Positions 23,682 to 52,472 of a DNA stretch of 64,000 nt are shown here, one piece after another (the stretch's first letter is position 1; the number at the start of each line of letters is the position of its first letter). Source of the stretch: Rebecca billardiae RCC1528 (lineage: Eukaryota; Protista; Haptophyta); NCBI GenBank assembly GCA_965240325.2, contig OZ251226.1, forward strand, positions 2,046,001 through 2,110,000, in the 5' to 3' direction. A model generated the notes under the pieces. The model saw nothing but the letters and a program-made list of their open reading frames with translations. It was not told the DNA's origin and did not search any database. The position numbers and the translations under genes are program-made.

Positions 23682-23852
23682 AGCTGAGAGCTCGGTATAG
23701 TTACACTCCTCATTCTGAGCTCGGTTTGGTGCCAACTCCCGTTAGAAAACTGTACTCACATCAACCAACAAATACTCACCAGGTCTCAGGGATCCATTCT
23801 ATTATTTAATTAACGACGCAATTAGGACCGGCATCAGGGCTATCATATCTAA

Positions 23853-24054
23853 TATTACCGATTTCGGGCAACCGAAATCGACAAACAAAAGAAAGCGGAA
23901 AAGTGAAAACCGATATCGAAAACGGAAAATATTTCTCGAAAACGAATAAACGATTTCGAGAAAACGAAAACGATTTCGAGAAAGAAAACGTTTTCGATTT
24001 CGATTTCTGGAAATCGTGTGTTGGCACGATTTCGGTTGCCCGAAATCGGTAATA
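23853..24054. mobile_element. MITE with perfect 28-bp terminal inverted repeat (outer TA may be the TSD)
   Basis: TATTACCGATTTCGGGCAACCGAAATCG at 23853-23880 and its reverse complement at 24027-24054; AT-rich interior with CGATTTCG/GAAAACG repeats. Confidence 0.85.
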
Positions 24055-27634: not shown

Positions 27635-30600
27635 ATGCCCTCCTCCTCATCCTCATCCTCTTTTCGAGCTCCGTTGCGCGTCGTCGTCGCAGTGGGTGTG
27701 CTGTGTGCGCTCGCACGCGTGCCGGGCGTCACGGCGCAAAACCCGCCGCCGAGCCCGCCGCCCTCGCCTCCGCCCGGCGTGCCCAACTCGGCGGTGGAGG
27801 TGTCCCTCGGTCACGCGCACACGTGCGTGCGCACGCCCGGCACCACGGTCTGCTTCGGCCGGAACCAGTTCGGCCAGTCTGGCAACGGCGGTGCCGACCG
27901 GCTCTGGACGGCGCCGTATCCGGACGCGCTCAACGTCGACTTTGGCGGCGAGCTCATCGTCGACGCGAGTGCTGGGTACGAGCACACTTGTGCGGTGCTG
28001 GCCTCTGGTGAGGCGTACTGCTTCGGTGGGGGCTCGCGAGGCGAGCTCGGCCAATTCGACACAGTGAACTACCGCGCCGACACGCTGTACTCCACGCAGT
28101 ACCCGCTCGCCCTCGGTGGCGCGGGCACGCGCGCCCTCAAGGTGGCGGGCAGGCAGGACTTCTCGTGCGTCGTGCACGAGGCTGCTGGCACATCGGCGCT
28201 CAGCTGCTTCGGCATGAACAACGGCTACCAAATTGGCGTGGAGGCGCAGTCGACTGGGTCCATCCTCGCGCCGAGCGTGGTCAGCCTGGGCGCGGACGTG
28301 CTGCAGGTCGTCGACGTGGACTGCGGCGTGTACCACTCGTGCGTGATTGTGTCGCTGAGCGGCAAGACCGGCAACCGGCTCAAGTGCTTTGGTGCACGCT
28401 CGCGACGAGCCACGCGCGCGCACGTCCAGCGGGCCAGCCCTACGCACGGGGTGGCTGGCCGTGCGGCGCGACGAGCACTGCGCGCTGCGTGCTGACGCCC
28501 CCGCCGCCCTCCCTCCCATCGACCTCATCAATGCACTGCGCGCGCCGGACGGATCCGTCGCCCTACAGGCAAGAACAATCTGGGCCAGCTCGGCTACGAC
28601 GACAACGTTAGGCGTAGCAACGTGCCCAGTGTGATGGGTGACGCCCTGCCCGAGGTCGACCTCTCGCACAACGTGGGCGCCGACTTCCACGTGGTGCGCG
28701 TGAGTGCTGGCGCTGATGGGACGTGCGCGCTGCTGTGCGCCGCCCCGTGCAACCCCGAGGCCGACGTGCTGTACGCCAAGTGCTGGGGCTCAGGCTACAA
28801 ATACATGCTCGGCTACGGTACGTTGCGCGCGGACCTGAGCGCGAGCGTTGCCCTCGCCCTGCTCGCGATGCCTCGCGCCGGGCACGCATATCGCTGACGC
28901 ACACTTCCTTTGATGATTGGCGACACGCGCGCCCACCGTCGACGAGCAGGCAGCAGCACTGACAACCTGGGCGACGGGACCGGCGAGATGGGCGCGCTCG
29001 AGCCGCTCGCCCTGCTGCACGCAGGCGGGCAGCAGAGCGTTGTCGACGTGTCCATCTTCGGTTACGCGTGCGCGGTGTACTCGGACACGACCGACACGAC
29101 GAGCGGCAACAAGCTCAAGTGCTGGTGCGCGCCGCGGGCCACCCGAAGCAAGCACGCGCGCGCCTCTGTGTGCTGACCGCTTCCGCACTCGTGCGCCCCG
29201 GCACGCACGCAGGGGGCTCAACCAGTTCGCCAAGCTCGGCCTCGACGAGAGCGACGAGGCCGCTGAGTTTGCAAACGACGCGAGCCTGCCAACAGTGGAC
29301 GTGTCGCTCTCCACGCCGGTCTATGTGCTCCGCGTGAGCACCGGCCTGTACCAGACCTGCTGCATCTACACGGACGCGACCTCGCCGGATGCGTCGCTCG
29401 TCAAGTGCTGGTGCGCGCTCGCACACGCCCGCTCATGGCCGCTGCTGCTCCGCATATAGCTGCGCGCGAGCGTGTGCGCACGCGCGCCTGACTTGAGCAC
29501 GGCGCGTGCCGCGCGATGCCTACCGCGCAGGGGGTACAACGTTCACGGGCAGCTGGGGCAGCCGACTGCATCCGATCCGATCGGCTCGGGCGCCCCGACG
29601 CTGCTCGCAGACGTGCCGCCCGTTGCGCTTGGCTTCACCGACGCGCCTTTTCCGCCGCCGCCGTCGCCGCCGTCGCTGCCGGCGCCGCCACCAAGCCCGC
29701 CGCCGCCGCCAAGCCCGCCGCTGCTGCCCGTGCCAGACCCCACCGACGTGGCGATCGGCAGGGGCCACACGTGCGTCCTCTCGACGAGGGGCGCGGTGTG
29801 CTGGGGCGACAATAGGAACCAGCCGGTGATGGCAGCGAGCGGCAATGAACGGTACGTGTCCGCAGGGATGTCGCTGCTCGACGAGGACATTGTGGGCGCA
29901 GCGTACAGCGCAGACCCAGTCGTCCAAGTGAGCGCCGGGTTGGAGAGCACGTGCGCACTGCTCGCGAGCGGGGCCGCGTACTGCTTCGGCACCAACTCGA
30001 ACGGCATCCTCGGACAAGGCAGCTCAGCGAGCTGGAGGATTGGCCTCAACGTGGCGGCGAGCACTCCGCCCATCAACCTCGGCGGCAAGCGCGCGATGCA
30101 GATCAGCATCTCCGAGTCGCACACGTGTGCCTCCGTGGATGCGGCGAGCGCCGGGTACGCGACTGAGCTGTACTGCTGGGGCAGAAATGCCGACGGCGAG
30201 CTCGGCGTGGGCTCGACGACGGTTCTGTACGAGCCTCAAGTCGCTGCCATCGAGCTGGGCTCGGGCGTGACGCGCGTGTGGCAAGTCGCAGCCGGCGTGT
30301 ACACGACGTGCGCCGTGCTCTCCTTGCCAGATCCTGCCGTGAGCGGCAGCACCGGCCGCCGGCTCAAGTGCTGGGGTGCGCGCACGCGCGATGCGGGGCG
30401 CGGCGCCGACACGCGCGCCCCCCGCACGGTGGAGCTGATGCGTCCGGCGTGCACGTTGACGCGACGCTCACGCGCACCGCACCCTGCATGCTGATGGGCG
30501 CCACTGCGCTGCGTGCGCGCCCTTGCGTGTGTCGCGCCGCGCAGGTAGCAACGCCCAGCATCAGCTCGCCAATCTGGTTCCGAGTACGGCGGACAAGCTT

Positions 30601-33600
30601 GGCGACGCGCCCGGCGAGATGGGCGACGCGCTGCCGATCATGGACCTTTCGAACGACGTCGTGCCTGCGGGTACGGACTACGATGTGCTGAGCGTCGCTT
30701 TGGGCTCACGCAGCTCGACGCCGTGCGCAATCGTGCAGGCCTCCGGCGAGCCACGAAAGCTCAAGTGCTGGGGGGCTTTGGGTTCCTACGCGTACTGTGC
30801 GCGCCCTCGCGCCCGCGGACCGCATTGCGCACGTGCCAGCCCGCAGCTCGCGCCGCGCCCCGCAGCGTGTGCGCACAGGGCGGAAGCGCCGCTCACGCGG
30901 CTCATGCCCATCACACCGCGCACGCGCAGTCAACGACGCGAGCGTGGGCCTCTCCGGCGAGCCGACTCACCCGGTGAACGACCTGAGCACGCTGACCGCG
31001 GTGAAGATGCTCTTCACCGCGGACGGGAGCGCGCTCGACATGCCCAACCAAGACGTCACCCATGCCGCCACTGACATCTCCACCATCTGCGCAGCGTACC
31101 GCAACATGTCTGCCCCAGCCGAGGACGACGCGGTCAAGTGCTGGTGCGTGCACTCGCACACACGCGTGCACGTCAGGCGCGCCGATGATCCCCATCGCAT
31201 GCATGCGCCCGCACGAGGGCGGGGGCGTGCACTGCGCGCGCTCATCGGCTGTTGGTGCACCGCAGCGCGCATATGCCTCCTGCTGCGCGCTCATGATGTG
31301 TCGTGCGCGCGCGTCGGCGCATGCGGGCGCGTGTCACACTGCAGGGGATACAATAATTACAAGACGCTCGGCTGGCCCCAGCCCTATCCTGACGCCCAAG
31401 GCTCGAGTTGGGCAGGGTACCATTCAAACTCAGCCACCGCGGGCAAGGTGTCCATCTCCGTGTCCCCGCCCGTGCGCGTGCTCAAGCTGGCCACCAGCAC
31501 AAAAGCAACGTGCGCTGTGTACACGGACGGCACGTCGACTGACGGCGGCGCCGAGCCGCACCTGAAGTGCTGGTGCGCGCGCAAGCGGCCTTGTTCCTCT
31601 CCGCCCTGCTGCGTGCGCCCTGCACACGGCCAGGGTGGCGTGAGCGTCTGCATGCGACGCTCACCAGTTCTCCGGGCCGCGCGCACGCGCCCGACTGCAC
31701 CAGGGGAGCGAATGACAAGGGCATGCTCGGCCAGCCGAGCACATTCATCGAGCCAAGGCCATACGTGGTGGCGAACATCCCGCCGGTGGACTTTGCGTTC
31801 CCGCTGCACCCGCCGTCTCCGCCGCCGAGCCCGGCCCCGCCGCCCTCGCCTCCGCCGAGCCCGCCGCCGCCGGCGCCACCGAGTCCGCCGCCCTCGCCTC
31901 CGCCCGGCGTGCCCAACAAGGTCACTGACGTGACCATCGGCAGGCACACTGTGTGCGCGAGCACGCCGAGCACTACGGTGTGCTGGGGCATCAACACCAA
32001 CGGCCAGGTGGGCAGCACCATGGGCAGTCGGATGTGGGCGCCGCCGTATCCTGCCGCGCTCAACACGGAGTTTGGCGGCGAGGTCATCGAGCACGCGAGC
32101 TCTGGGAAGATTCACAGCTGCGTCGTGCTCGCGTCGGGCGCTGCGTACTGCATTGGCTATGGCTACTGGGGCCAGCTGGGGCAGGGTGACACGGTCAACC
32201 ACCTGGCGGACGATCTGTACGCGGCGAGTCAGCCGATCGCGCTCGGCGCGGGCGCACGCGCGGTGCGCGTCTTTGCTGCCTGGCAGCACTCGTGCGTGTT
32301 GCACGAGAGCAGCGGCACGCGCGCGCTGAGCTGCTTTGGGCACAACAATGGCGGCCAGGTGGGCAGCTGGAGCGCGGGGGATACGATCCTCGTGCCCACA
32401 CTCGTGCCGCTCGGTTCGGACGTGCTGCAGGTCGTCGACGTCGCTGCGAACAAGGAGCACACGTGCGCGATCGTCTCGCTGAGCGGGAAGAGTGGCGACC
32501 GCCTCAAGTGCTGGGGTGCGCGCGCGCCGCATACCCGCGAGTGCCGCCCATGCGCTTGGCTGCAGTCTGCCGATGCTCGCGCGACGCGCCGACGGTGCGA
32601 CCCTGCGCCTGCGTTGCTCGCTCGCCTGCGTGCATCAGGCACTGGCGGCAGGGGTCGTCTCGGCTACGACGATGCGCTCTCTCGCGGCCTGGACAGCGCC
32701 GTGATGGGCGACGCCCTGCCCGAGGTCGACCTCTCTCCCAACGTGGGCTCCCACTTCCACGTGGAGCGCGTGAGTGCTGGCACGGAGTCGACGTGTGCGA
32801 TGCTGTGCGCTGCGCCGTGCACACCCGAGACGGACACGATGTACGCCAAGTGCTGGGGCTACGGCCTCTTCTCCAGGCTCGGCTACGGTGCGCAGCGTTG
32901 CACGCGCTGTGTTGGCACGCGCTCGGCGTGCGCACAGCTGCTCAGCTGCTTTGGCGCACGCGTCGCGCCTTCCCTCGCGAGCAGGCAACAGCAACCTGGA
33001 CGTGGGCGATTCCGTCGGCGAGATGGGCTCATTGGCGCCAATCGATCTGCACACAACAGGCACGCAGAGTGTGCTCGACGTCTCCAGCTTCGGGACATAC
33101 TCGTGCGCAGTCTACTCCGACTCGAGTGCGCCGAGTGGCAACAAGCTCAAGTGCTGGTGAGTGCTACAGTGAAGCACTGCGTGCGGCGCGCACACCGACA
33201 GCGCATCCCATCCTCACCTGTGCGCGTGATGTGTGCTCTGCACGGCGCGCAGGGGGCGCAACGGGGATGCCGTGCTCGGTCTCGACGAGAGCGACCTCAC
33301 TGCCGTCTTCCCCAATGACGCCAGCCTGCCCGCAGTGGTGGTGTCGAGCGCCGCACCAGTGTCTGTGCTGCGCGTGTGGGCGGGAGAGTTTGTCGCGTGC
33401 TGCCTCTACACGGACGCGACGTCGCCTGTCGATTCGCTGCTCAAGTGCTGGTGCGCGGCACTGCGCACCGCGCGGCGCGGCGTGGTGCATGGCTCGTGCT
33501 TGCATGCGCGGGAAGGCAGTTTGCGTGCGCTCCGGAGCTCGGGCGGTCAGGGGCTGAGAGCGCCCGCGCACGCCCCCGCTGCGCGCGCCATCGCAGGGGG

Positions 33601-36600
33601 CGTAACGATTTGCCTCGGCTCGGCCAGCCGTACACGGGTGATATCATAGGCACGGGCAGTCCGCCGCTGGCAGAGGTGGAGCCGGTGGCGCTGGGCTTCG
33701 CTGACCTGCCGTTCCCACCGCCACCGTCGCCGCCAAGCCCGCCGCCGAGCCCGCCTCCGCCACCGAGCCCGCCGCCGAGTCCACCGCCGCCGGCGCCACC
33801 GAGTCCGCCGCCCTCGCCTCCGCCCGGCGTGCCCAACTCGGCGGTGGAGGTGTCCCTCGGTCACGCGCACACGTGCGTGCGCACGCCCGGCACCACGGTC
33901 TGCTTCGGCCGGAACCAGTTCGGCCAGTCTGGCAACGGCGGTGCCGACCGGCTCTGGGCGGCGCCGTATCCGGACGCGCTCAACGTCGACTTTGGCGGCG
34001 AGCTCATCGTCGACGCGAGTGCTGGGTACGAGCACACTTGTGCGGTGCTGGCCTCTGGCGAGGCGTACTGCTTCGGTGGGGGCTCGCGAGGCGAGCTCGG
34101 CCAATTCGACACAGTGAACTACCGCGCCGACACGCTGTACTCCACGCAGTACCCGCTCGCCCTCGGTGGCGCGGGCACGCGCGCCCTCAAGGTGGCGGGC
34201 AGGCAGGACTTCTCGTGCGTCGTGCACGAGGCTGCTGGCACATCGGCGCTCAGCTGCTTCGGCATGAACAACGGCTACCAAATTGGCGTGGAGGCGCAGT
34301 CGACTGGGTCCATCCTCGCGCCGAGCGTGGTCAGCCTGGGCGCGGACGTGCTGCAGGTCGTCGACGTGGACTGCGGCGTGTACCACTCGTGCGTGATTGT
34401 GTCGCTGAGCGGCAAGACCGGCAACCGGCTCAAGTGCTTCGGTGCACGCTCGCGACGAGCCACGCGCGCGCGCGTCCAGCGGGCCAGCCCTACGCACGGG
34501 GTGGCTGGCCGCGCGGCGCGACGAGCACTGCGCGCTGCGTGCTGACGCCCCCGCCGCCCTCCCTCCCATCGACCTCATCAATGCACTGCGCGCGCCGGAC
34601 GGATCCGTCGCCCTACAGGCAAGAACAATCTGGGCCAGCTCGGCTACGACGACAACGTTAGGCGTAGCAACGTGCCCAGTGTGATGGGCGACGCCCTGCC
34701 CGAGGTCGACCTCTCGCACAACGTCGGCGCCGACTTCCACGTGGTGCGCGTGAGTGCTGGCGCTGATGGGACGTGCGCGCTGCTGTGCGCCGCCCCGTGC
34801 AACCCCGAGGCCGACGTGCTGTACGCCAAGTGCTGGGGCTCAGGCTACAAATACATGCTCGGCTACGGTACGTTGCGCGCGGACCTGAGCGCGAGCGGTG
34901 CCCTCGCCCTGCTCGCGATGCCTCGCGCCGGGCACGCATCTCGCTGACGCACACTTCCTTTGATGATTGGCGACACGCGCGCCCACCGTCGATGAGCAGG
35001 CAGCAGCACTGACAACCTGGGCGACGGGACCGGCGAGATGGGCGCGCTCGAGCCGCTCGCCCTGCTGCACGCAGGCGGGCAGCAGAGCGTTGTCGACGTG
35101 TCCATCTTCGGTTACGCGTGCGCAGTGTACTCGGACACGACCGACCCGACGAGCGGCAACAAGCTCAAGTGCTGGTGCGCGCCGCGGGCCACCCGAAGCA
35201 CGCGCGCGCCCCTGCATGCTGACCGCTTCCGCACTCGTGCGCCCCGGCACGCGCGCAGGGGGCTCAACCAGTTCGCCAAGCTCGGCCTCGACGAGAGCGA
35301 CGAGGCCGCTGAGTTTGCAAACGACGCGAGCCTGCCAACAGTGGACGTGTCGCTCTCCACGCCGGTCTATGTGCTCCGCGTGAGCACTGGCCTGTACCAG
35401 ACCTGCTGCATCTACACGGACGCGACCTGGCCGGATGCATCGCTCGTCAAGTGCTGGTGCGCGCTCGCACACGCCCGCTCGTGGCCGCTGCTGCGCCGCA
35501 TAGCTGCGCTCGAGCGCGTGCGCACGCGCGCCTCACTTTAGCGCGGCGCGTGCCGCGCGATGCCTACCGCGCAGGGGGTACAACGTTCACGGGCAGCTGG
35601 GGCAGCCGACTACATCCGATCCCATCGGCTCGGGCGCCCCGACGCTGCTCGCAGACGTGCCGCCCGTCGCGCTTGGCTTCACCGACGCGCCTTTTCCACC
35701 GCCACCGTCGCCGCCGTCGCTGCCGGCGCCGCCACCAAGCCCGCCGCCGCCGCCGAGCCCGCCGTTGCTGCCCGTGCCGGACCTCACCGACGTGGCGATC
35801 GGCAGGGGCCACACGTGCGTCCTCTCGACGGCGGGCGCGGTGTGCTGGGGCGACAACAATAACAACCCGGTGATGGCTGCGAGCGGATCGTCACGGTACG
35901 TGTCCGCCGGGATGACGCTGCTCGACGAGGACATTGTGGGCGCAGCGTACAGCGCAAACCCAGTTGTGCAAGTGAGCGCAGGTTGGGACAGCACGTGCGC
36001 ACTGCTCGCGAGCGGGGACGTGTACTGCTTCGGGCTCAACTCGAACGGCATCCTCGGGCAGGGCAGCTCAGCGGGCTCGACGATTGGCCTCAACTCGGCG
36101 GCGAGCACTCCACCCATCAACCTCGGCGGCAGGCGCGCGATGCAGATCAGCATCTCCGAGTCGCACGCGTGTGCCTCCGTGGATGCGGCGAGCGCCGGGT
36201 ACGCGACTGAGCTGTACTGCTGGGGCAGAAATGCCGACGGCGAGCTCGGCGTGGGCTCGACGACGATTCTGTACGAGCCTCGAGTCGCTGCCATCGAGCT
36301 GGGCTCAGGCGTGACGCGCGTGTGGCATGTCGCCGCCGGCCTGTACACGACGTGTGCCGTGCTCTCCTTGCCAGATCCTGCCGTGAGCGGCAGCACCGGC
36401 CGCCGGCTCAAGTGCTGGGGTGCGCGCACGCGCGATGCGGGGCGCGCCGCCGACACGCGCGCAGCCCGCACGTTGGAGCTGATGCGTCCGGCGTGCACGT
36501 GGACGCGACGCTCACTCGCACCGCGCCCTGAATGCTGATGGGCGCCACTGCGCTGCACGCCCTTGCGCGTGTCGCGCTGCGCAGGTAGCAACGCCCAGCA

Positions 36601-39600
36601 TCAGCTCGCCAATCTGGTTCCGAGTACGGCGGACAAGCTTGGCGACGCGCCCGGCGAGATGGGCGACGCGCTGCCGATCGTGGACCTCTCGAACGACGTC
36701 GTGCCTGCGGGTACGGACTACGATGTGCTGAGCGTCGCTCTGGGCCCACGCAGCGTGTCACCGTGCGCGATCGTGCAGGCCGTGCAGGCCTCCGGCGAGC
36801 CACGAAAGCTCAAGTGCTGGGGGGCTTTGGGTTCCTACGCGTACTGTGCGCGCCCTCGCGCCCGCGGACCGCATTGCGCATGTGCCAGCTCGCAGCTCGC
36901 GCCGCGCCCCGCAGCGTGTGCGCACAGGGCGGAAGCGCCGCTCACGCGGCTCATGCCCATCACACCGCGCACGCGCAGTCAACGACGCGAGCGTGGGCCT
37001 CTCCGGCGAGCCGACTCACCCGGTGAACGACCTGAGCACGCTGACCGCGGTGAAGCTGCTCTTGAACGCGGACGGGAGCGCATTCGACATGGCCAACCAA
37101 GACGTCCTCCATGCCGCCACTGACATCTACACCGCCTGCGCAGCGTACCGCAACATGTCTGCCCCAGCCGAGGACGACGCAGTCAAGTGCTGGTGCGTGC
37201 ACGCTCACACGCGCAGATCGTCAGGCGCGCCGATGATGCCCATCGCACGCGTGCGCCCGCACGAGAGCGGGGCGTGCACTGCGCGCGCATATCGGCTGTT
37301 GGCGTGCTGCAGGACGCATATGCGTCCTGCTGCGCTCTCATGCTGCGTCGTGTGCGCGCGGCGGCGCACGCGTGTCACTGCAGGGGATACAATTTTCACA
37401 AGACGCTCGGCTGGCCTCAGCCCTATCCTGACGCCCAAGGCTCGAGTTGGGCAGGGTACCACTTAAACTCTGCCATCGCGGGCAAGGTGTCCATCTCCGT
37501 GTCCCCACCCGTGCGCGTGCTCAAGCTGGCCACGAGCACAAAAGCAACGTGCGCTGTGTACACGGACGGCACGTCGACTGACGGCGGCGCCGAGCCGCAC
37601 CTGAAGTGCTGGTGCGCGCGCAAGCGGCATTGCTCTCATCTGTCCGCCCTGCTGCGCGCGTCCTGCACACGGCCAGGGCGGCGCCAGCGTCTGCGTGCGA
37701 CGCTCACCAGCCCTCCGTGCCGCGCGCGCGCGCCCGACTGCACCAGGGGAGAGAATGACAAGGGCATGCTCGGCCAGCCGAGCACATTCATCGAGCCGAG
37801 GCCGTACGTGGTGGCGAACATCCCGCCAGTGGACTTTGCGTTCTCGCCGTACTCGCCGTCTCCACCGCCGAGCCCGCCGCCGAGCCCGCCGCCGAGCCCG
37901 CCGCCATCACCGCCGCCAAGCCCGCCGCCAAGCCCGCCGCCAAGCCCGCCGCCGAGCCCTCCACCCCCTCCGCCGCCGTCACCACCGCCGAACCCGCCGC
38001 CGAGCCCACCGCCGAGCCCGCCGCCGAGCCCGCCGCCGAGCCAACCGCCGAGCCCGCCGCCATCGCCACCTCCAAGCCCGCCGCCGAGCCCGCCGCCGAG
38101 CCCTCCACCCCGTCCGCCGCCGTCACCACCGCCGAGCCCGCCGCCGAGCCCGCCGCCGAGCCCGCCGCCGAGCCCTCCGCCAAGCCCGCCGCCAAGCCCG
38201 CCGCCGAGCCCTCCACCCCCTCCACCGCCGTCACCACCGCCGAGCCCGCCGCCGAGCCCGCCGCCGAGCCCGCCGCCGAGCCCGCCGCCAAGCCCGCCGC
38301 CATCGCCACCTCCAAGCCCGCCGCCAAGCCCGCCGCCGAGCCCTCCGCCACCTCCGCCGCCATCACCACCCCCAAGTCCACCGCCGAGCCCACCGCCGAG
38401 CCCACCGCCGAGCCCACCGCCGAGCCCGCCGCCGAGCCCGCCGCCATCACCGCCGCCGAGCCCGCCGCCAAGCCCGCCGCCATCACCACCCCCAAGTCCA
38501 CCGCCGAGCCCACCGCCCAGCCCACCGCCGAGCCCGCCACCCAGCCCGCCGCCATCACCACCTCCAAGCCCACCACCGAGCCCGCCGCCGAGCCCGCCGC
38601 CATCACCGCCGCCAAGCCCGCCGCCGAGCCCACCGCCGAGCCCGCCGCCGAGCCCGCCGCCCAGCCCGCCGCCAAGCCCGCCGCCGAGCCCTCCACCCCC
38701 TCCACCGCCGTCACCACCGCCGAGCCCGCCGCCGAGCCCGCCGCCGAGCCCGCCGCCGAGCCCGCCGCCAAGCCCGCCGCCGAGCCCTCCACCCCCTCCG
38801 CCGCCGTCACCACCACCGAGCCCGCCGCCGAGCCCGCCGCCGAGCCCGCCGCCGAGCCCGCCGCCGAGCCCGCCGCCAAGCCCACCGCCATCGCCACCCC
38901 CGTCGCCGCCGCCTTCTCCGCCGCCCTCACCGCCGCCCTCGCCGCCGCCCTCACCGCCGCCGAGCCCGCCACCAAGCCCGCCGCCGAGCCCGCCGCCATC
39001 GCCGCCTCCAAGCCCGCCACCGTCACCGCCGCCATCACCGCCGCCCAGCCCGCCGCCATCGCCACCGCCATCGCCGCCGCCCAGCCCGCCGCCCAGCCCG
39101 CCGCCGAGCCCTCCGCCATCGCCACCTCCAAGCCCACCGCCAAGCCCGCCCCCGAGCCCACCGCCGAGCCCGCCGCCGAGCCCGCCGCCGAGCCCGCCGC
39201 CATCACCACCCCCAAGTCCACCGCCGAGCCCACCGCCGAGCCCACCGCCGAGCCCGCCACCCAGCCCGCCGCCATCACCACCTCCAAGCCCACCACCGAG
39301 CCCGCCGCCGAGCCCGCCGCCATCACCGCCGCCAAGCCCGCCGCCGAGCCCACCGCCGAACCCGCCGCCGAGCCCGCCGCCGAGCCCGCCGCCGAGCCCA
39401 CCACCAAGCCCACCGCCCAGCCCGCCGCCCAGCCCGCCGCCTTCGCCACCCCCGTCGCCGCCGCCTTCTCCGCCGCCCTCACCGCCGCCCTCGCCGCCGC
39501 CCTCACCGCCGCCGAGCCCGCCACCAAGCCCGCCGCCGAGCCCGCCGCCATCGCCGCCTCCAAGCCCGCCACCGTCACCGCCGCCATCACCGCCGCCCAG

Positions 39601-42600: not shown

Positions 42601-45600
42601 GGCGAACATCGGCGCGGCCGCCGGCCAGATGGGCGCGCTGCGGCCCATCGAGCTGCTGCACACGCCCGGCGCGCAGCAGAGCGTCATCGACCTGTCCATC
42701 TTCGAGGACCACGCGTGCGCCGTGTACGCCAACGGCTCCGGCGCGCCGAGTGGCGGCAACGAGCTCAAGTGCTGGTGCGCGCGGCGCGCCGGGTTGCACG
42801 CGGCGCGCGCAGCCTGGCTGACCCTCCCGCCCGCGGATCGGCGCGCGCCGCCACGGCTGCACGCGCAGGGGCCGAAACCGACACGCCAAGCTCGGCCTCG
42901 ACGAGAGCGATCTCGCGGCCGTGTACGCCAACGACGCCAGCCTGCCCGCGGTGCGCGTGTCGAGCTTCGAGCCGGTCTCGGTGCTCCGCGTGCGCGCTGG
43001 GGCGTCGCACACGTGCTGCCTGTACACGGACGCCACGTCGGCCGTCAAGCCGCTCGTCAAGTGCTGGTGTGCGGCCGCGCGCGCCCTCCAGCCGTGGGCA
43101 CGCGGCGCGGCGCGCTCCGCGCGAAGCGTGATGGCCGCCGCGCTGGGCCGAGCACGGGAGACGCGGCGCACGGCACCTGCTGACCGTGTGCGCGCCCACC
43201 TGCCCCGCGCGCGCGCTCACAGGGGGCGCAACGACTTTGGCCAGCTCGGCCAGCCCTTCACGGGGGAGCCGCTCGGCGCGGGAGGCTCCCTGCTACTCGC
43301 GGACGTGCCGCCAGTCGCGCTGAGCTTCAGCGACTCGCCGCTCCCACCGCCTGCCCCGCCGTCCAGCCCTCCGCAGCCGCCGTCGCCCCCGCCGCTGCCC
43401 AGCTCGCCGCCAGCGCTGCCGCCGAGCTCGCCGCCGCAGAGTCCGCCGCCGCCGCCTCGCGCCGCGCCGTTTCCGCCGCCGTCGCCACCGTCACCGCCGC
43501 CGCCGCCGCCGAGCCCGCCGCCCAGCCCGCCGCCCAGCCCGCCGCCCAGCCCGCCGCCCGACGCGCCTCCGAGCCCGCCCCCGTCGCCGCCGCCCTCGCC
43601 GCCACCGCCGCTGCCGCCGCCGCCGCCGCGCTACTCGACCGGCCACGCGTACGACGGCTACCTGGGCGACTGCACCGTCTTTGTCGACCTGGACGGCGAC
43701 CTGAAGCTCGGCCCGGGCGAGCCGTCGTCCGACACGGACGAGAGCGGAGGATTCCTGCTGCTCAACGAGCTGCGTGAGTTTGGCAACGCGCCGTACGTGC
43801 TCACGGCCTCGGACGGCGGCTCGTGCGTGGACGCCGACTCGGGGCTCTCCGTCAAGATCCCGCTGATGGCGGGCGCGAGGCAGACCTCGATCTCCTCGAT
43901 CACGACGATCGTGCTGCTCGCCGCGCGCGAGCTCGAGGCGCGCGGCGTCGACGCGGCGGCAGTCGCCATCCTCTCCGGCGGCTCGGCCTCGAGCGAGGCC
44001 GCGTCCGACCTCGAGCTCGCCACCGAGCTGGCGATCGGCGACTGCCTGAGCCTGGACGTGCTCGCGACGGGCGGGCTCGCCGACCCGTTCCCGAAGCTGT
44101 GGATGGGCGGCGAGCAGTCGAGCGCGCAGGCGGCCCTGGTCGAGCAGACAGCGGTGCTGCACGCCGTGACGACGCTCGTCGCGGGCGCGATCGCCGCGTT
44201 CGAGAGCAGCGACCCGGCCGCGGCCGCGACGCCGAGCAAGATGGCGCCGCACGCGCTGCGCGTGCAGAGCGCGATGTCGCGCGTGATGGCCGGCGCGCTC
44301 GAGGCCACCCTGCGCAACGCGTCTGTGAACCTGACGAGCGGCGAGCTGCTCATCGGAGGCTCGGGCAGCGCCGCTGCGCTCAACATCTCGTGCGAGCTTG
44401 ACCTCGGCTCCGACGCGACGGTGCGCGAGATCATCGACGCGGCCAACGAGCAGGAGGCGCCCGAGCGGCGCGTGCCCGCGGAGACGGTCGCGCCGCTCGC
44501 GCAGGTGGTCTCCGGCGGCGTGCGCTCTGTGCGCTCGTTCGTGCAGCCGGCGGCGATGGATGTGCGCGCCTCCCTCAACGCAACGACCAACGCCACCTCG
44601 GCCGTCTCGTCGTACGTGCGCCGCGTGAGCGCGGGCGGCAGCTTCCTGCAGTCCTCGCTGCTCGGCCTGGTCGCCGCGCCGTTCGCCTTGCTCCGGCAGC
44701 AGAACACGTCCGCGCTGCCGTCCAACGGCAGCGCGGCCACGAACGCGACCAACGGGACCGCTGGCGAGGAGGCGGGCGGTGGCGGCCTGTTTGGCGGCGG
44801 CGGCGGCGGCGGCGGCGGTCTGGGCGCGACGGTGAGCGCACTCGGAGACATCTTCAGCCAAGTGGCGGACGAAGGCGCCAGCCAGGCGAGCCTGGAGGCG
44901 GAGCTGGAGATCGTCGCCGTGAAGGGCCTGGCGGGCAACTGCCCGGAGACGGCGTGGTGCGCCCCGCCGGCGAGCCCGCCGCCACCGTACTCGCCGCCGC
45001 CCGCGCCGCCGCCGCCGGTGCCGCCGTCGCCGCCGAGAAGCCCTCCGCCTCCGAGCCCACCGCCGCCGCCAAGCCCTCGGCCTCCGCCGCCGCCCACGCC
45101 GCCGCCGCCGAGCCCGCCGCCGCCGCCCGTGCCACCGCCGCGCTTCGAGCCGTTCCCGCCGCCCAGCCCGCCCGGCCCAGCGCTCGCGCGCGCCAAGCTC
45201 ACCGGCGTCAGCCCGCGCGGCGCGGCGATCGGCGCGCCGACGGACGTCACGATCGAGGCGAGCGGGCTCGGCCCCGCGCTCGAGCACCGCGAGTCGCTCA
45301 CGTGCGCCTTCTACGTCGAGGGCGACGAGGAGGTGCTCGAGGTGGGCGTGCGCGAGATCAGTGCCACCGCCGTGCGCTGCGAGCCGATCGTCGCGCCCGG
45401 CTTTGCGCTCGCCGTCGTCGTCGAGCTGCGCGCCGCGGGCTCGGAGCCGGCCGCGCTGCTCGCCAGCTCGTCCTTCATGTGGTTTAGCCCGGCGGCCATC
45501 GTGCTGGGAGCGGTGGAGCCGGCGGGCGTGCCCGCCGGCGTGGAGGGGCGCGAGGTGAAGGTGCTCGGCACCGGGCTGCTCGACCTGGGCGCGCTCACGT

Positions 45601-48600
45601 GCCGCTTCGACGGCTGGGCGCTGGCGCCCGCGCAGCTGCGCTCGGCGACCGAGGTGCGGTGCACGCTGCCGCAGCTCGGCGGGCTCGGCGGCGCGGGCAT
45701 GCGCTACGCGGCCGTCGAGCTCTCGCCCAACAACGTCACCTTCGCGCCGACGAGCGCGAGCCTCGCGCTGTACACCGCGGCGGTGACGGCGAGCGAGCCG
45801 GCTGCCACGCCCGCGGGCGCGCCCGCGCCCGTCACGCTGCGCGGCGTCGGCTTTGCGCAGCTCGGCGACGGCGCCGCGGCGGTGTGTGAGTATGCGCGCG
45901 CGGACGACGGCCCGGCCGAGCCCTTCTACAGCTCGGCGCTCGTGCTCGACAACGCCACCGCGCGGTGCGGCGGCATGGCGCCCGCGCGCGCCGTCGCCGG
46001 CGCGCGCTACTCGGTGCGCCTCTCTCTGAACGGCGACGCGCGCGACCTCGTCCTCAGCGCGCGCGGCGAGATTGCAATCTCGACGTACGACCTGAGCGCC
46101 GTGCGCATTGACGCGGTGGAGCCGCTGGGCGGGCCGCTCGGCGCCAGCACGCGCGTGACGCTCACCGGCGTCGGCTTCGGCGGCGAGCTCGCGCGCGACG
46201 GGCTGTGCTGCGTGCTCGACGGCGCGTGCGTCGCGCCCGCCACGCTGCTGCTCAGCGCGCGCGGCGCGAGCGTCGTGCGCGCGGCGTGCACGCTGCCGGC
46301 GGCGGCTGGCGCGAGCCGCGGCGGCGCGCGTTCGCTCGAGCTCTCGCTCGCTCATGGCGCGCCCGGCACGACGACGAGCTTCGGCCACCAGTTCGCGTAC
46401 TACGAGCAGCCGTACTTGAGCGCTGTCTCGCCCGCGCTCGGTGCGCCGACCGGCGGCGAGCTCGTGACGATCACGGGTGGCGGGTTTAGCGAGCTCGCCA
46501 ACGCAACCAACTTGTCGGCGGGCGCGCGCGGCGCAGCCGCGCGCGCAGTGCGCGTGCGCTTCGGCGACGTGCTCGCGCCGCCGCCGCTGCGCGTGACGGA
46601 CGAGCAGATCGTCGTCGCCTCGCCGTTCGGCGCGGCGGGCTCGACGGCGCTCGTGCAGGTCGCGCTGAACGGCCGAGCGTTTGTGAGCACCGAGCCCGAG
46701 CCGTCCGCCAACGCGGCCAACCTCTCGTTCGCGTATGGAGAGGGGCTGCACGCGCCCGCGCTGCTCTCGGCGCGGTACAACGCGGAGGCGACGGCGCTCG
46801 TGCTCCAGCTCGACGCGCAGCCCACCGACCGCGCGGGCATGTCATCGGGCCTCGCGCCGTGCAGCGCCGTGCTCGACGACGCCACCGTGTCGCGCATCCG
46901 CGGCGCCGAGCCGACGGCGCCGCTCTGCTTTTGGGAGGACGACAGCATGCTCGTTGCGCGGCTCGGCCCGCTGACGCAGATCGCGCCGGGCGACGCGGTG
47001 GCGCTACGTGCGGGCACGCTCCGCCCACGCGCCGCGCCGCCGCCGCCCGTCGGAGGCGGCGCGTGCGCCGACGGGCTCTGCGCGACCGACGCTTCGGTGC
47101 TCATTCCCCTGGACGAAGACAGCGCGTGCGTGGGCGGCTGCCCGCTGCCGAGCGCGCGCATCGTCGGCCCGGAGAGCGTCTCCGCGTGCCCAGGCCAGCC
47201 ACTCACGCTGCGCTCGACCGGCTCAGGGGGCGGCGGGATCGCGCCGCTCGCGTACGAGTGGAGCGTGGACACGACCACCCTCGGCGCGGCGGCGGCCGCC
47301 GAGCTCCTCGCCGCCGTCTCGTCGTCGGGCACGCCTACGCTCAGCGTTGCGCTGCCGCCGGGCGACGTATTCGGCTTTGGCCTCCGCGTCTCCTCCTTCC
47401 TCGGCTTCGCCTCCGAGCGCACGGCCTTCACCGTGCGCCGCTCGGCGGCGCTCGATCCGGTCGTCACGCTCCTCGGGCCCGCGCGGCGCGCCGTGCGGCC
47501 AGGCCAGCCCGCGGTGCTGCGCGTGAGCGCGCGGCCTGCGAGCTGCTGGCCGCCGCCGCCCGCAGAGGGTGAGGCGGCAGCGTCGAGCGCGATCGGCTTC
47601 GAGTGGAGCATGGTGGCCGCCGTGCCGACCGACGGCTCGGCCGGCCCGACGCCGCCAGTCCCCTTCGACGCAGCCGCGGCCGCGCTGGACAAGCTGGCGC
47701 TGCAGCCATGGTCGCTCCGCGCAGGGTACACGTACACGCTGCGCGTGACGGCGAGCATGACGGCCGACGCGGCGCTGAGCGCGGCCGCGCAGCTCGAGCT
47801 CGTCGTGCAGCCGCAGCCGGTGCGCGCCGTGATCGCGTCGGGCGACCGCACCGCGTCGACTGCGGCCGCGACGATCACCTTCGACGGCTCCGGCTCCGTC
47901 GACGAGAACGTGGGCGACGGTGAGCAGCTCGAGTACAGCTGGGCGGTGTCGGCTGCTCCCGTGGCAGGCGCCGAGTCCGCGCCGCCGCCGCCGCCGCCGC
48001 TCGTGTCGGCGAGCGGCAGTGGACCAGGCTCCTCGACGCTGTCGCTCGCGCCGGCGGAGCTCGGCGGCAGCGCGGGCGAGTACGTCGTCACGCTCACCGT
48101 CTCGAGCACCGACGGCCGCTCCGACGGCGCGAGTGTCGCGCTCACGCTGCTCGCGCCGAGCGCGTCAGGCGTGCCGCTCGCGCAGCCTGCGCTTTCGCTC
48201 GGCCGCGGCCCTCTCGCCAAGTTCGGCACAGAGTGGGACGCGCCCGAGCAGTCGATCGCCGTGCTCGTGGGCCTCGACCCGCCCTCGCGGCAGCTGCAGG
48301 CGCAGGGCGTGGTCACCTACACGTACGCGTGGAGCCTGTACGAGCGCGCGGGCGCGGGCGCGCTCGTGCCCGCGCGCGCGGCCGACGGCTCGGCGCTCGA
48401 TCTGGCCGACGAGATCGGCGCGACGACGACGGGCGCGGCCAAGCCGTCGCTCGTGTTCCGCAGCGGCGCGCTCGTCGCCGGCGTGACGTACGCGCTGCGG
48501 CTGGAGGTGCGCGCCGGCGCGGACGACGCGCAGCCCTCCGTCTCGCAGCTCGAGCTCGTGACCAACCGGCCGCCGTACGGCGGCGCGCTGACGGCCAGCC

Positions 48601-51600
48601 CGACCGAGGTTGATCTCTTTGACAGCCTCACGCTGCGCGCGGACGGCTGGACGGACGACGCGGACGACCTGCCGCTGCGGTACCGGTTCGGGTACGCGCC
48701 GACCGGCTCGACGGCGGGCGCGGGCGTGGCGCAGCTGCTGGGCAGCGCGCCGAGCCTCGACACGAGCGCGTCTGTCGTGCTGCCGCAGGGCGAGCACGAC
48801 GCGACGCTCACCGTCCTCGACCAGTTTGACGGCGTCGCGAGCGCGGCCGCGGCCGTGCGCGTGCGCCAGCTGGGCGCCGAGGAGCAGACGGCGGAGGTGG
48901 CGCAGCGCGGGCTCGAGAGCGCGGCGGGCGCGCTGGGCGTGGGCGACGTGGACGCCGCCCTGCAGCTCGTCGTCGCCGTCGCCGACGCCACCGCGCCGGC
49001 CGTCGCGTCAAGCGACGCCGCCGAGGGCAGCGCTCTCGTCGGGGGCCTGCTCGAGCTCACGCGCTCCGCGCTCGGCGGCGTCGTCGACGACACGGGCCGC
49101 GCGCAGCTCTCGAACGCGATCGCGACGGTGCTGCGCGCACGCGCCGCGCTCGACGGCGACGCGCGGCTCGAGGGGCTCGCGCAGGTCGCCGCCCTCGCCG
49201 AGGGCACCTCCGCCGCCTCGTCCGCGGGGCTCGACAGCACGAGCGCGCGCAACGTCATCTCCAGTCTCGACAGCGTGCTGCTCTCGACCGACGGGGCCGA
49301 GCCGAGCGGCGCCGAGGACGGCGGCGCGGAGGCGGGGGCGGAGGACGAGGCGCTCGACCTCGCGGTGGAGCGCGCGTCGGGCGCGCTCGCCGACGCTCTC
49401 CTCGTCGGGCTGCTCCCCGGCGAGGCGTCGCGCGAGCTGACGAGCGCGCGCGTCAACCTGACGGTCGCTCGCTCGTTTGGCTCGGCGCTGCAGAACTCGA
49501 CGCTCAGCTCGGCCGGTGGCGGCGGCGGCGTGGCGCTGCCGTCGGGCGTGTTCGCCGGCTCCGAGCTGACCGACCCGCTGAGCGAGGCGGTCGACGTGCA
49601 GCTCGTGCTGCTGCAGCGCAACATCCACGCCGACCCGCGCGCGTTCAGCGCGGACGGCGGTCGCGAGGACGACGGCGGCGGCGGCCGGACGCTCTTCGGC
49701 GGCGTCGAGTACGCGCTGGGCGACATGCAGGCGCTGCAGTCGCCCGTGTTCAGCTTCAAGCTGCGCCGCGCGGCCGAGCCGTCGCCGCTCTCGATCAGCG
49801 GGCTGGCCGAGCCGGTCGAGCTCGTCATCCCGCTGCTCGGCCCCGACGAGCTCGCGACGCTCGGCGACGCGCAGCCGGCCGCGCCGGAAGGCGACGTGTG
49901 CGCGACCGACGCGGACTGCGCCGCGCCGAGCGACGTCATGCCGCGGGGCGCGTGCAACTACACCACGCCGAACGCGACGGCGCGCAGCTGCGTGTGCGAC
50001 GACGCGTACTACGGGCCGACGTGCGCGCACCTCGTCACGTGCACCTTCTGGAACGAGACGGAGGCGCGCTGGTCGAGCAAGGGGTGCCGCGCGCGCAGCG
50101 TGAGCGGCGGTGCCATCGTGTGCGCGTGCGACCACCTCACGGACTTCGCCGCCCTCTCCGTGGCGATCGCCGAGGTGGCGAGCGGCGAGGACTCTGGCGA
50201 GGTGAGCGTGAACCAGGTCGAGACGCAGGACCTCGAGGGCGAGTCGCCGAGCGGCGTGGTGCGGGTTGTGGCCGGGCGGCTTGCGGCCAACTTTTGGGGC
50301 GTGGTCGTCGTGTGCGTCGTGCTCGGGCCGATGCTGCTGCTTCTCTTCGTCGCGCACCGCGTCGACCTGCAGATCGAGCGGCAGCCGTCGGTGCCGCAGT
50401 GGAAGCTGCGCGCGGCCCAGTCGATCTGGTGGCGCGCGGGCGCGCACATGCTCACGCGCTCGACGCTCACCTCGTGGCTCACGCGGCTGCCGGGCGACCC
50501 GAAGAGCGCGAAGATGCGCGTGCTGCTGCTGATGAACGTGACGCTGGTCGAGCTCTTCGTGATGGCGCTCTTCATCGGCCAGGCGGAGGACCTCTCCGCG
50601 ACGCAGCTGATCGTGAGCGTGGCGGTGGGCATCGCGTCGGGCTACCCGTACGAGGCCTTCTTCCTCGAGCGGCTGCTCGAGTGGAGCGTGCGCAGGCGCG
50701 GGCTGCTCGAGGAGCGGCCCGACGGCGTCGACCCGGCGGACGCGCAGACGCGCCGCGCCGCGCTGCGCATGGCGGCGGTGATCGAGCCGACGACCACGTC
50801 GACCAGTGCGGCCGCCGCGGCGAAGAAGGCGCGGGACGCGGCGAAGGCGGCGCACGACGCGGTGCAGGGCGCGGCCCACGCCGCGGCGCACGCCGCGCAC
50901 CTCGACCGCCACGACGCCCACCATTCCAAGGACAGCGAGTCGGAGGAGGCCGAGCCTGTCGCGCACAAGCTGCGGTACGTGCGGCCTGAGAACGTCAAGC
51001 TGATCGAGGCGGACGCGGTGAGCGCGATCGCGGCCAACGAGGCGGCGGGCGGGGAGGACGCCGGCACGCCCTCGCCCCCGCCCTCGCCGAGCGCGCAGCC
51101 CTCGCCCATGCCCCTGCCCCGGCCCCAGTCCCTCGGCGTGATGGCCTACCTCGGTGGCGGCCCCACGGAGTCGCCCCCGCCCTCGCCGAGCGCGCGGCCC
51201 TCGCCCCTGTCTCGGCCGCAGTCGTTCGGCGGCGGCTCCGCCGCGTCGCCCGCCGCGTCGCGCGGCGCGGCGGAGTCGGGCGCGCGTGACAGCAGCGGCA
51301 CGGGGCCGAAGCCGCGCGCGCTCGTGCGCCGCGCGAGCTCGATGACCCAGCTGGGCCGGTTGCGGGTCAGGGACGCCGATCTCCCGCCGGGCGCGATGAC
51401 GGTGAGCATGCCAGACCAGGCACTCATCTCGATCCCGCAGGACGAGGGGCAGATCGTCGGCTTCTTCGTCGCGCGCACGTGGCAGGAGACCGTCATCAAG
51501 ACGGTGATCCCTCCGCCCAACAGGCCGTCCATCCTCTCCGAGATGGCGGGCGTGCGGCTCCACTTTGACCGCGGGCAGCACGAGCTGCTGGAGGAGGCGC

Positions 51601-52472
51601 ACCGCACGCTCGACTTCCACGACGGCGTGCCCGACGTGCGCTTTGTGCAGGCGGAGCGCGTGTACCGCCGCGCCCCGATCCCCGCCGACCAGGCGCAGCA
51701 CACGTACGGCCTCGTGAGCATGCGCACGCACGCGCGGCGCGGCTCGACGGCCGGAGGCGCGGCCAACAAGACGCGGCTGGGCAGCCTGAAGGCCGGCCTG
51801 TCGCGTGGAGACAAGGAGAGCGGGCCGATGGCCAAGATGGTGCAGGTCGTGCACCTCACCAGCCCGTACATCGACGGCCGGCAGATCCTGCCCACCGACG
51901 TGATCGCGCAGCCCAACGTGGCCGCGCGCGCCGCCCTCGACGCGTACGACCAGGTGCACGGCCACGGCCACGGCCACGGCCACGGCCAAGCCGAGGCGCA
52001 CGCCGCGGAGGGTGGCACAGCGAGCGCGAGCGCGAGTGCCGAGCCGGTGACACGGCATCGCGTGCACGAGCGCGTGCGCCTCACGCGCTTCGAGCTGGAG
52101 CACGCGCAGTGGTGGGCGAACAAGCCGAAGGCGTGGAAGCTGCGGACGGCGACCACTGTGAACGTGCTCCTCATCTGCGCCGTGGCGTGCCTGCTGCTCA
52201 CCTTCTCCATCCTCGGCGGCGCGGGCGTGCGCGACCCCGAGGTCTGGCGGCAGGAGATCCTGGTCGCGTGGCTCATCGAGACCGCGTTCAAGCTCGCGCT
52301 CATCGAGCCGGGCGTCGTGCTCGCGCGGCTGGTCATCGACCTCTTTGTGAGGACGTGCGTGCCAGAGGCGTACCGCGACTGGGCGATCGAGGTGTTCGTC
52401 GAGCCGTTCCTCCACCAGCTGCGCAAGCCGAAGAAGCTGTTCAAGGACGTCCTCGGCTTCGACTTGTGCTAA
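27635..52472 (+). CDS. Giant polycystin-1/REJ-GPS-like surface receptor with RCC1-repeat modules and SPPP stalk (~24 introns, roughly 7,000 aa)
   Basis: Signal peptide (LRVVVAVGVLCALARVPGVTA-Q). RCC1 repeats (GHAHTC, CFGRNQFGQSG, KCWG.N..GQLG) linked by GT-AG introns, e.g. 28392-28568, 28818-28949, 29125-29212, 29411-29530, 43067-43222. Final exon has five IPT/TIG repeats, REJ hallmark NRPPYGG...GWTDD..LPLRYRFGY, EGF-like CVCDDAYYGPTC, GPS CTFW...WSSKGC...CACDHLTDFA and 5 TM segments. The single-gene model is inferred; not every junction was checked. Confidence 0.8.
27750..37855 (+). repeat. Intragenic ~4-kb near-identical duplication (27750-31800 vs 33800-37855), introns included
   Basis: Sequence at 27841 recurs at 33891 (offset 6050); exons and introns match almost letter for letter. 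Confidence 0.92.
37858..41455 (+). repeat. Coding 12-bp tandem repeat encoding (SPPP)n, about 300 units
   Basis: AGCCCGCCGCCG-type units with synonymous variation; the frame stays open as SPPP between RCC1 modules. Confidence 0.95.

Follow-up and report, generated by a model that had tools for sequence, protein, structure and literature searches.

Can the membrane half of polycystin-1 (PC1) serve as a receptor base on its own, far from animals, and what would such a base carry? This question is raised by a locus in the haptophyte Rebecca billardiae RCC1528 (assembly GCA_965240325.2, contig OZ251226.1, positions 2,046,001 to 2,110,000 of the forward strand). We analyzed this 64,000-nt window, in whose coordinates all positions are given, and focused on 27635-52472 of the plus strand (about 24.8 kb). 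A preliminary description had read the region as one chimeric gene, in the order signal peptide, RCC1 modules A-B-C-A'-B', an SPPP stalk, module C', a bacterial-type domain, five IPT units, PKD/REJ, EGF, GPS, and five transmembrane (TM) helices with a large loop after the third. The single gene with this domain order is supported as a sequence model. We read it, with moderate confidence, as one nuclear gene for a channel-less mechano- or contact receptor of the polycystin-1/adhesion type, with its N-terminus outside the cell. New here are the six propellers of two types, the rod between the fifth and sixth of them, and a recent internal duplication. Also new are an orphan loop domain in place of EF-hands, a relative carrying Sec7-PH, and a quantitative match between the predicted fold of the base and PC1 TM1-TM5. 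Literature searches found no paper on this architecture in haptophytes.

Gene model and introns

GC content is high across the window (57-83%), and in appearance the gene body resembles that of a eukaryotic alga. From 27.5 to 52.5 kb the plus strand carries long open stretches in alternating frames, and two very long open reading frames (ORFs; 37187-43183 and 42921-52472) close the gene region. Junctions were placed by a dynamic-programming search using codon statistics trained on the last exon, which yielded 25 predicted exons and 24 GT..AG introns of 84-201 nt. The predicted coding sequence of 21,576 nt would specify 7,191 amino acids (aa), or approximately 725 kDa before modification. The preliminary description had staked its single gene on the absence of stop codons after splicing, and the frame check found none in the 24-intron model. 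Family searches were run exon by exon, while the joined protein served for the frame and stop check, for coordinates, and for ratios of nonsynonymous to synonymous substitution (dN/dS).

Splicing appears to follow a regular pattern. A blade of an RCC1 propeller ends in K-C-W/F and the GT donor, mostly GTGCGC, stands directly after it. The acceptor is YAG, often with CTGAC before it, and the next blade then opens with G-x-N-x-x-G-Q-L-G. The same four-intron layout, with homologous positions and phases 1, 1, 2, and 2, recurs in each of the six modules. Since the same introns are found even in modules that are 35% identical in protein, they are older than the module duplications. We also considered an introner-type origin for the introns and rejected it, as they are alike only between recently duplicated blocks. 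GC content at third codon positions is 0.88 in the model versus 0.75 for the introns overall, and dN/dS between modules ranges from 0.15 to 0.53.

No intron interrupts any inter-module linker, the rod, or the junction between C' and the IPT-REJ-GPS-TM part, so continuity of the gene requires only that propeller-internal introns be spliced. Exon 21 (4,328 nt) comprises the last strand of B', the rod, and the first four blades of C', and exon 25 (9,250 nt) runs from the last strand of C' to the stop. Because the last strand of a propeller shares an exon with the following linker and the next module, a cut placed between modules breaks propellers. Intron 24 (43067-43222, 156 nt) and part of intron 19 (37193-37273) keep the frame and contain no stop codon. 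If splice signals were ignored, gene prediction would read through both and place spurious Arg/Ala-rich residues in a propeller blade. The protein is missing from the protein collection searched, which we attribute to its introns and repeats.

The REJ-GPS core and the five-helix base

The membrane-proximal part had been described as polycystin-1-like, and the REJ and GPS assignments bear this out. Pfam PF02010 (REJ) scores 117.8 bits against a cut-off of 25 (E values are in Table 1), and the homologous stretch of the relatives covers REJ profile positions 13-452. Of the proposed PKD/REJ pair only REJ was retained, with PKD falling below threshold in this protein. The GPS motif was likewise recovered by Pfam, and its profile matches the GPS of adhesion G-protein-coupled receptors (GPCRs) at 1.3e-7. 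The C, W, G, and C residues and the HLT site are invariant in six homologues. HLT is intact in the window protein, approximately 50 aa upstream of TM1, and the residues behind the cut site read T-D-F-A-A-L, which presumably fits the T-x-F-A-x-L of adhesion-GPCR tethered peptides. Autoproteolysis between the Leu and the Thr is plausible from this motif.

The base itself has the layout previously proposed. Hydropathy and an AlphaFold2 (AF2) model both give TM1-3, a large loop, and TM4-5. The TM1-TM2 loop is about 55 aa long, basic, and helical in the model, the TM3-TM4 loop is about 480 aa, and the reading frame ends at the stop at 52470-52472. Charge distribution fits a topology with the N-terminus outside and the C-terminus inside. 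An exhaustive phmmer search with the 777 post-GPS residues against 1.84 billion representatives returned 15 proteins, none of them a long animal-type PKD1. In the alignment of the base (A1), conserved blocks follow TM1 and cover TM2-3, an alpha/beta domain just before TM4, and TM4-5. The alpha/beta domain, at 51381-52118, is found in all 15 relatives, and it matched no family in Pfam, NCBIfam, or the Atlas feature search.

The AF2 model generated from A1 has a predicted local distance difference test (pLDDT) score of 85-94 in conserved parts and 85-93 in the TM helices. When compared with 48,161 chains using VIA-align, its top match was polycystin-1 (8z6b_A, residues 3068-3610, from the PC1/PC2 complex), with Z 16.5 and a root-mean-square deviation of 3.8 Å over 183 aligned residues within model residues 43-729. 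The second-ranked match has Z 6.3. We take PC1 3068-3610 to be TM1-TM5, with PLAT in the first loop and a TM3-TM4 loop of approximately 220 aa. This match carries weight because of the 10-unit Z gap, because it falls exactly on the segment that follows the REJ-GPS unit, and because the position of the large loop agrees. The predicted bundle resembles PC1 TM1-TM5. GPCR-like folds reach Z ≤5.7 against the model, and with five TM helices the base is not a seven-TM class B2 bundle. Pfam gave no PKD_channel match, and the protein ends about 40 aa after TM5, so the PKD2-like channel half is absent. PLAT is absent as well: Pfam found none in the last exon with a cut-off of E≤1, nor in the post-GPS piece with one of E≤10.

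Several points weigh against reading the locus as a PC1-type receptor. The gene model was built from genomic DNA alone, with splicing and expression predicted, and junctions that were discordant between paralogous modules were corrected by hand to agree, so the exon-intron structure is partly of our own making. The PC1 match comes from one AF2 model of an 18-row alignment, and the VIA-align notes caution that helical bundles can score Z ~14 without kinship. Neither exhaustive phmmer nor a profile against PDB sequences linked the TM base to PC1, so the PC1-type N-terminal bundle is recognized in the predicted structure with no sequence signal. Foldseek of the base against the PDB gave no match, and an Atlas shape search gave template-modelling scores of ≤0.14. 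PLAT helps define the PKD1 family, and its absence counts accordingly. Upstream of GPS, the AF2 model has helices followed by strands, which is the order of GAIN subdomains, at a pLDDT of 50. At that score the GAIN fold is unconfirmed, leaving autoproteolysis at the plausible level given above. A Foldseek search with this pre-GPS model was uninformative, matching GAIN entries weakly and in the GPS strands only. For the extracellular part, a dN/dS of ~0.5 indicates rather relaxed constraint on the propellers, and the copy number of the 12-nt repeat encoding the rod could be mis-assembled. Lastly, hydroxylation and glycosylation of SPPP in haptophytes is something we infer.

Propellers, rod, and remaining ectodomain

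The start codon at 27635 opens an N-terminus with a hydrophobic core at aa 16-30 behind Arg residues and then a small-residue site before QNPPP, in agreement by inspection with the proposed signal peptide. In modules A, B, C, and C', the large exons gave matches to Pfam RCC1, RCC1_2, and the RCC1-like domain. In translation, each module shows seven blade motifs, as in seven-bladed RCC1-type propellers. The number and order of modules therefore stand as first described, with the stalk between B' and C'. The label C' does not, as this module is equally near A and C (~59% identity to each). The propellers fall into two types, one comprising A, C, A', and C' (mutual identity ~59%) and the other B and B' (~35% identity to the first type). 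Pro-rich linkers of 30-42 aa join the first five. At 30-34% identity, the blades resemble RCC1 domains from bacterial surface proteins with several domains and from a Chlamydomonas gametolysin-RCC1 protein, which places them near extracellular RCC1-repeat proteins of bacteria and algae. None of 70 matches in the 793-2,523-aa range combined RCC1 with REJ or GPS.

Self-blastn aligned A-B with A'-B' at 94.7% DNA identity over 4,163 nt including introns, with a spacing of 6,050 nt. The duplicated blocks are 27744-31892 and 33794-37929, and the roughly 5% differences are spread along their length. From this alignment, A-B/A'-B' is a recent internal duplication of about 6 kb. Each of its two boundaries falls within a Pro-rich linker, a placement that points to linkers recombining unequally with one another. 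On the right, the homology stops at 37929, at the beginning of the rod, and the rod thus stands where the ordinary 35-aa B-C linker would be. From its position, the rod looks like an expanded inter-propeller linker.

The complete B'-C' linker spans 37844-41455. Within it, the stalk previously put at about 1,200 aa was confirmed at 1,168 aa, or 16% of the protein, with Pro making up 75% of its residues. SPPP accounts for 266 of its 292 tetrapeptides, which is the Ser-Pro(3-4) repetition of an extensin-type hydroxyproline-rich glycoprotein (HRGP). No Tyr cross-link motifs were seen in the rod translation. The underlying DNA has 53 distinct 12-nt units and uses Ser codons of both families, AGY (190) and TCN (88). 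Since many distinct units encode one peptide, selection appears to act on the peptide and this is not a slipping microsatellite. A polyproline II (PPII) helix rises by ~0.31 nm per residue. In the TLP-4 glycofibril, 1.24 nm per tetrapeptide was measured (PMC11725842). By analogy with these values, the rod would be about 0.36 µm long.

Between C' and REJ, the picture is more mixed. The region 43632-44993, previously labeled a bacterial-type domain, has no relative in Pfam, NCBIfam, Atlas, or a word search. The label was dropped, as the best word-search matches cover 3-13% of the query and a pairwise check gave E 1.1. Of the five IPT/TIG units proposed, the fifth passes the Pfam TIG threshold (1.2e-9; 3.7e-15 in the whole-exon scan), the second (3.3e-3) and fourth (4.8e-3) are weak, and the first is marginal (TIG_2 0.22). 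The third has no Pfam match and is assigned by its pattern and its conservation in relatives. The whole array aligns to the metagenomic protein P0001 (46% identity) and to a further relative, P0002. The EGF-like motif is below the Pfam threshold in this protein and somewhat better supported in relatives (EGF_Tenascin/Teneurin, 8e-4) and by a profile against reelin/selectin EGF (3e-3).

Two neighboring regions were also noted. Downstream, 55209-58655 on the minus strand holds a single 1,148-aa ORF with a Nup84/Nup107 nuclear-pore domain (Pfam E 1.5e-68) in a stretch of ~81% GC. Upstream, 22000-26000 has a GC content of 57-60%, markedly below its surroundings, and long ORFs that matched nothing in Pfam; it possibly represents intergenic sequence or repeats.

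Table 1. Predicted features of the gene, in window coordinates (TRF, Tandem Repeats Finder).
Feature	Position	Strand	Basis
Start codon and signal-peptide-like N-terminus, aa 1-34	27635-27736	+	Inspection
RCC1 propeller A, aa 48-495; exons 1-5, 7 blades, 4 introns	27776-29636	+	Pfam, exon 1: RCC1 3.7e-14, RCC1_2 2.7e-11, RCC1-like domain 3.4e-21
Introns of propeller A	28392-28568, 28818-28949, 29125-29212, 29411-29530	+	
RCC1 propeller B, aa 526-1005; second type, ~35% identical to A/C	29727-31800	+	Pfam, exon 5: RCC1 5.7e-17, RCC1_2 3.2e-16
Introns of propeller B	30376-30544, 30797-30929, 31144-31344, 31573-31703	+	
RCC1 propeller C, aa 1041-1484; A-type, 59% identical to A	31906-33699	+	Pfam, exon 9: RCC1 2.6e-16
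Introns of propeller C	32516-32638, 32888-32984, 33157-33252, 33451-33596	+	
RCC1 propeller A', aa 1527-1974; 99.1% aa identity to A	33826-35680	+	Self-blastn; dN/dS 0.15
Introns of propeller A'	34442-34618, 34868-34999, 35175-35258, 35457-35574	+	
RCC1 propeller B', aa 2005-2487; 91.7% aa identity to B	35771-37843	+	dN/dS 0.53
Introns of propeller B'	36420-36584, 36846-36978, 37193-37383, 37612-37746	+	
Ser-Pro3 rod, aa 2495-3662, 1,168 aa; inside exon 21	37865-41368	+	TRF, period 12, 285 copies
RCC1 propeller C', aa 3692-4144; membrane side of rod, last strand opens final exon	41456-43328	+	Pfam: RCC1 5.3e-13, RCC1_2 1.1e-9
Introns of propeller C'	42075-42216, 42469-42590, 42775-42868, 43067-43222	+	
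Pro-rich linker, ~100 aa	43329-43631	+	Translation
Orphan extracellular region, ~450 aa	43632-44993	+	No family match
Pro-rich linker	44994-45197	+	Translation
Five IPT/TIG-like units	45198-46760	+	Pfam TIG and alignment to relatives
REJ module; weak PKD-like stretch at 47841-48143	46761-48974	+	Pfam REJ 6.4e-34
Helical-then-beta region before GPS, possible GAIN subdomains A and B	48975-49892	+	AF2 model, pLDDT 50
EGF-like Cys-rich motif	49893-50033	+	Pfam EGF_2 0.13 (weak)
GPS motif; His-Leu/Thr at 50133-50141	50034-50153	+	Pfam GPS 1.1e-10
TM1	50292-50381	+	Hydropathy 2.89; AF2 helix at model residues 52-81, pLDDT >90
TM2-TM3 hairpin	50508-50690	+	Hydropathy, AF2; 35-41% identical to P0026 and the L001 gene
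Cytosolic TM3-TM4 loop; low-complexity part, then conserved alpha/beta domain (51381-52118)	50691-52130	+	Alignment A1; pLDDT up to 94
TM4-TM5 hairpin	52131-52358	+	Hydropathy, alignment A1, AF2
Short basic cytosolic tail (~40 aa) and stop (52470-52472)	52359-52472	+	Relatives stop at same place

Relatives, mechanism, and competing readings

Among named relatives, Diacronema lutheri KAG8459354.1 (3,751 aa), annotated as hypothetical or as an EF-hand domain-containing protein, comes closest to the membrane-proximal cassette. It has a different N-terminal part followed by IPT-REJ-EGF-GPS, five TM helices, and EF-hands in the TM3-TM4 loop. Together with the metagenomic proteins P0001, P0003, and P0026, it shares the cassette of five IPT units, REJ, EGF, GPS, and five TM helices with the window protein at 34-46% identity, and the conserved domain next to TM4 is common to all of them. 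The N-terminal heads of the relatives differ, and KAG8459354.1 has neither RCC1 nor the SPPP rod. P0026, a 1,459-aa protein from a Joint Genome Institute (JGI) metagenome, is 35% identical over GPS-TM1-3 (E 1e-33) and carries Sec7 (E 6e-45) and PH before the conserved domain and TM4-5. As an observation in its own right, P0026 would be a membrane receptor with a built-in guanine-nucleotide exchange factor for Arf. The loop thus holds EF-hands or Sec7-PH in relatives and neither in the window protein. Since it takes different signalling domains, the base appears to be a signalling device and not a mere anchor.

A genomic contig from another organism, L001, holds a gene with 46% identity over the stretch that begins at the first IPT unit and ends with the C-terminus. 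Its intron at L001:5087-5339 splits GPS exactly between the HLT and DFAA codons, at the predicted cut site, and there is no intron at that place in the window gene. Among metagenome contigs, 74 loci matched the pattern of an IPT-to-GPS protein and none was confirmed.

With PC1/PKD1 and the SpREJ proteins, the window protein shares a large modular ectodomain, REJ, a GPS with the HLT triad just before TM1, and the N-out orientation, and with PC1 also a large cytosolic TM3-TM4 loop. SpREJ proteins have 1 to 11 TM segments (PMC1934368). Compared with PC1, the window protein is missing PLAT/LH2 after TM1, the PKD2-like channel half (TM6-11), and the C-terminal coiled coil. It has no LRR, WSC, C-type lectin, or firm PKD repeats, and bears instead the RCC1 propellers and the (SPPP)n rod. 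It belongs with the PKD1/REJ family, yet it lacks two of the features that define that family, PLAT and the channel half. Adhesion GPCRs share the GPS motif, a C-terminal fragment that starts T-x-F-A-x-L, and a long adhesive ectodomain, but have seven TM helices versus five here.

Other systems resemble the extracellular part. Chlamydomonas MST3 has PPII rods hundreds of nm long and a PKD-like domain as anchor (PMC11015965). MST3 (Mstax) and other SIP-dependent PKD-like surface proteins follow the same design as the window protein, with distal N-terminal globular domains, a PPII rod, and a polycystin-related C-terminal anchor (PMC11015965). The anchor of MST3, however, is an incomplete PKD2-like channel domain completed by SIP, whereas the window protein has REJ-GPS and a PC1-type TM1-5 with no PKD_channel or other channel-like domain, and the lineages are a green alga and a haptophyte. 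Extensin-type HRGPs and TLP-4 tetrapeptide glycofibrils (PMC11725842) also have long Ser-Pro3 runs; in the window protein, such a run lies inside a putative membrane receptor.

If the protein is a receptor, we propose that the SPPP segment forms a stiff PPII rod, probably hydroxylated and glycosylated and ~0.36 µm long, which would keep the propeller array clear of the cell or flagellar surface. At its tip, the five distal propellers on their 30-42-aa Pro linkers would form a beads-on-a-string binding array of ~70 nm. Cleavage at GPS occurs in PC1 and suREJ3 (PMC1934368), and the window protein may likewise be cut between the Leu and Thr of HLT, with the fragments remaining associated. Ligand binding, or a pull or drag on the rod, would then strain or shed the N-terminal fragment and alter the five-TM base. 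We modeled this step on the tethered agonism of adhesion GPCRs and on PC1, for whose stalk a tethered-agonist role has been proposed (PMC9672506). The conserved TM3-TM4 loop domain would relay the signal into the cell. We infer the location, ligand, and expression of the protein.

The preliminary description had envisaged an antenna holding its propellers away from the membrane. A rod of this length would indeed put five propellers a few hundred nm out, but the sixth lies on its membrane side, and an image of propellers raised on a stalk thus captures only part of the arrangement. The sixth propeller may have been left behind when the linker expanded, or it may serve as a second site of binding close to the membrane.

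The leading alternative is a passive hair or tether comparable to MST3: a purely structural surface fiber, such as a flagellar or body hair or a scale tether, whose base is an anchor and whose propellers bind the cell's own surface material. Pavlovophytes bear flagellar hairs and knob scales, and the rod alone makes up 16% of the protein. MST3/Mstax forms the core of a passive-looking ciliary hair with hydroxyproline-rich PPII helices (PMC11015965), and free tetrapeptide-repeat glycofibrils occur naturally (PMC11725842). A fiber does not, however, account for the cytosolic domain beside TM4 that is kept in all relatives, nor for the strict conservation of the GPS motif, and the EF-hands and Sec7-PH inserted in the relatives' loop are hard to explain for an anchor. 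We therefore consider a structural fiber rather unlikely.

A receptor for gamete or cell-cell recognition, similar to agglutinins or suREJ and used only in a sexual or rare life stage, is a special case of the receptor reading. Sea urchin REJ proteins act in sperm-egg recognition (PMC1934368), and an Ectocarpus REJ-GPS protein is male-gamete-specific and positively selected (PMC4700764). The relaxed or diversifying propellers (dN/dS ~0.5) and the recent module duplication are in keeping with such a role, to which we nonetheless assign a low probability. Slightly less probable still is that the locus is not one functional gene but at least two (an RCC1/HRGP gene and a REJ receptor gene), a pseudogene, or an assembly artefact: the protein's absence from the collection searched speaks for this, as do the near-identical A-B/A'-B' blocks and the simple 3.5-kb repeat, both hard for assemblers, yet the 21.6-kb spliced model is stop-free, any cut between modules leaves broken propellers, the ~5% differences are spread over the duplicate blocks, unlike in a collapsed or doubled assembly, and the rod is under peptide-level selection.

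For the channel-less receptor that we favor, the consequences reach beyond this locus. The design of a globular head, a polyproline rod, and a polycystin-type anchor is extended from green algae (MST3) to a haptophyte with a different anchor, which suggests a widespread way to build sub-micrometre cell-surface antennae. The locus also illustrates how such a gene may grow, with modules duplicating via recombination in Pro linkers and one linker expanding into a rod. In PC1, what TM1-TM5 contribute independently of the channel half is poorly understood. Because a PC1-type TM half occurs alone far from animals, conserved and with a domain-accepting loop, it amounts to a naturally made separation of PC1's receptor part from its channel part. 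We tentatively suggest that REJ-GPS-5TM is an ancient, self-sufficient receptor module, and that animal PC1 is this module joined to a PKD2-like channel subunit. The haptophyte form would work without a channel, with force or ligand at the rod tip acting on the GPS junction and output passing through an effector in the TM3-TM4 loop. Candidate effectors would be the conserved alpha/beta domain of the window protein, the EF-hands of Diacronema, and the Sec7-PH Arf-GEF of P0026. If this is true, the function of PC1's poorly understood TM1-5 bundle would become testable in a simpler setting.

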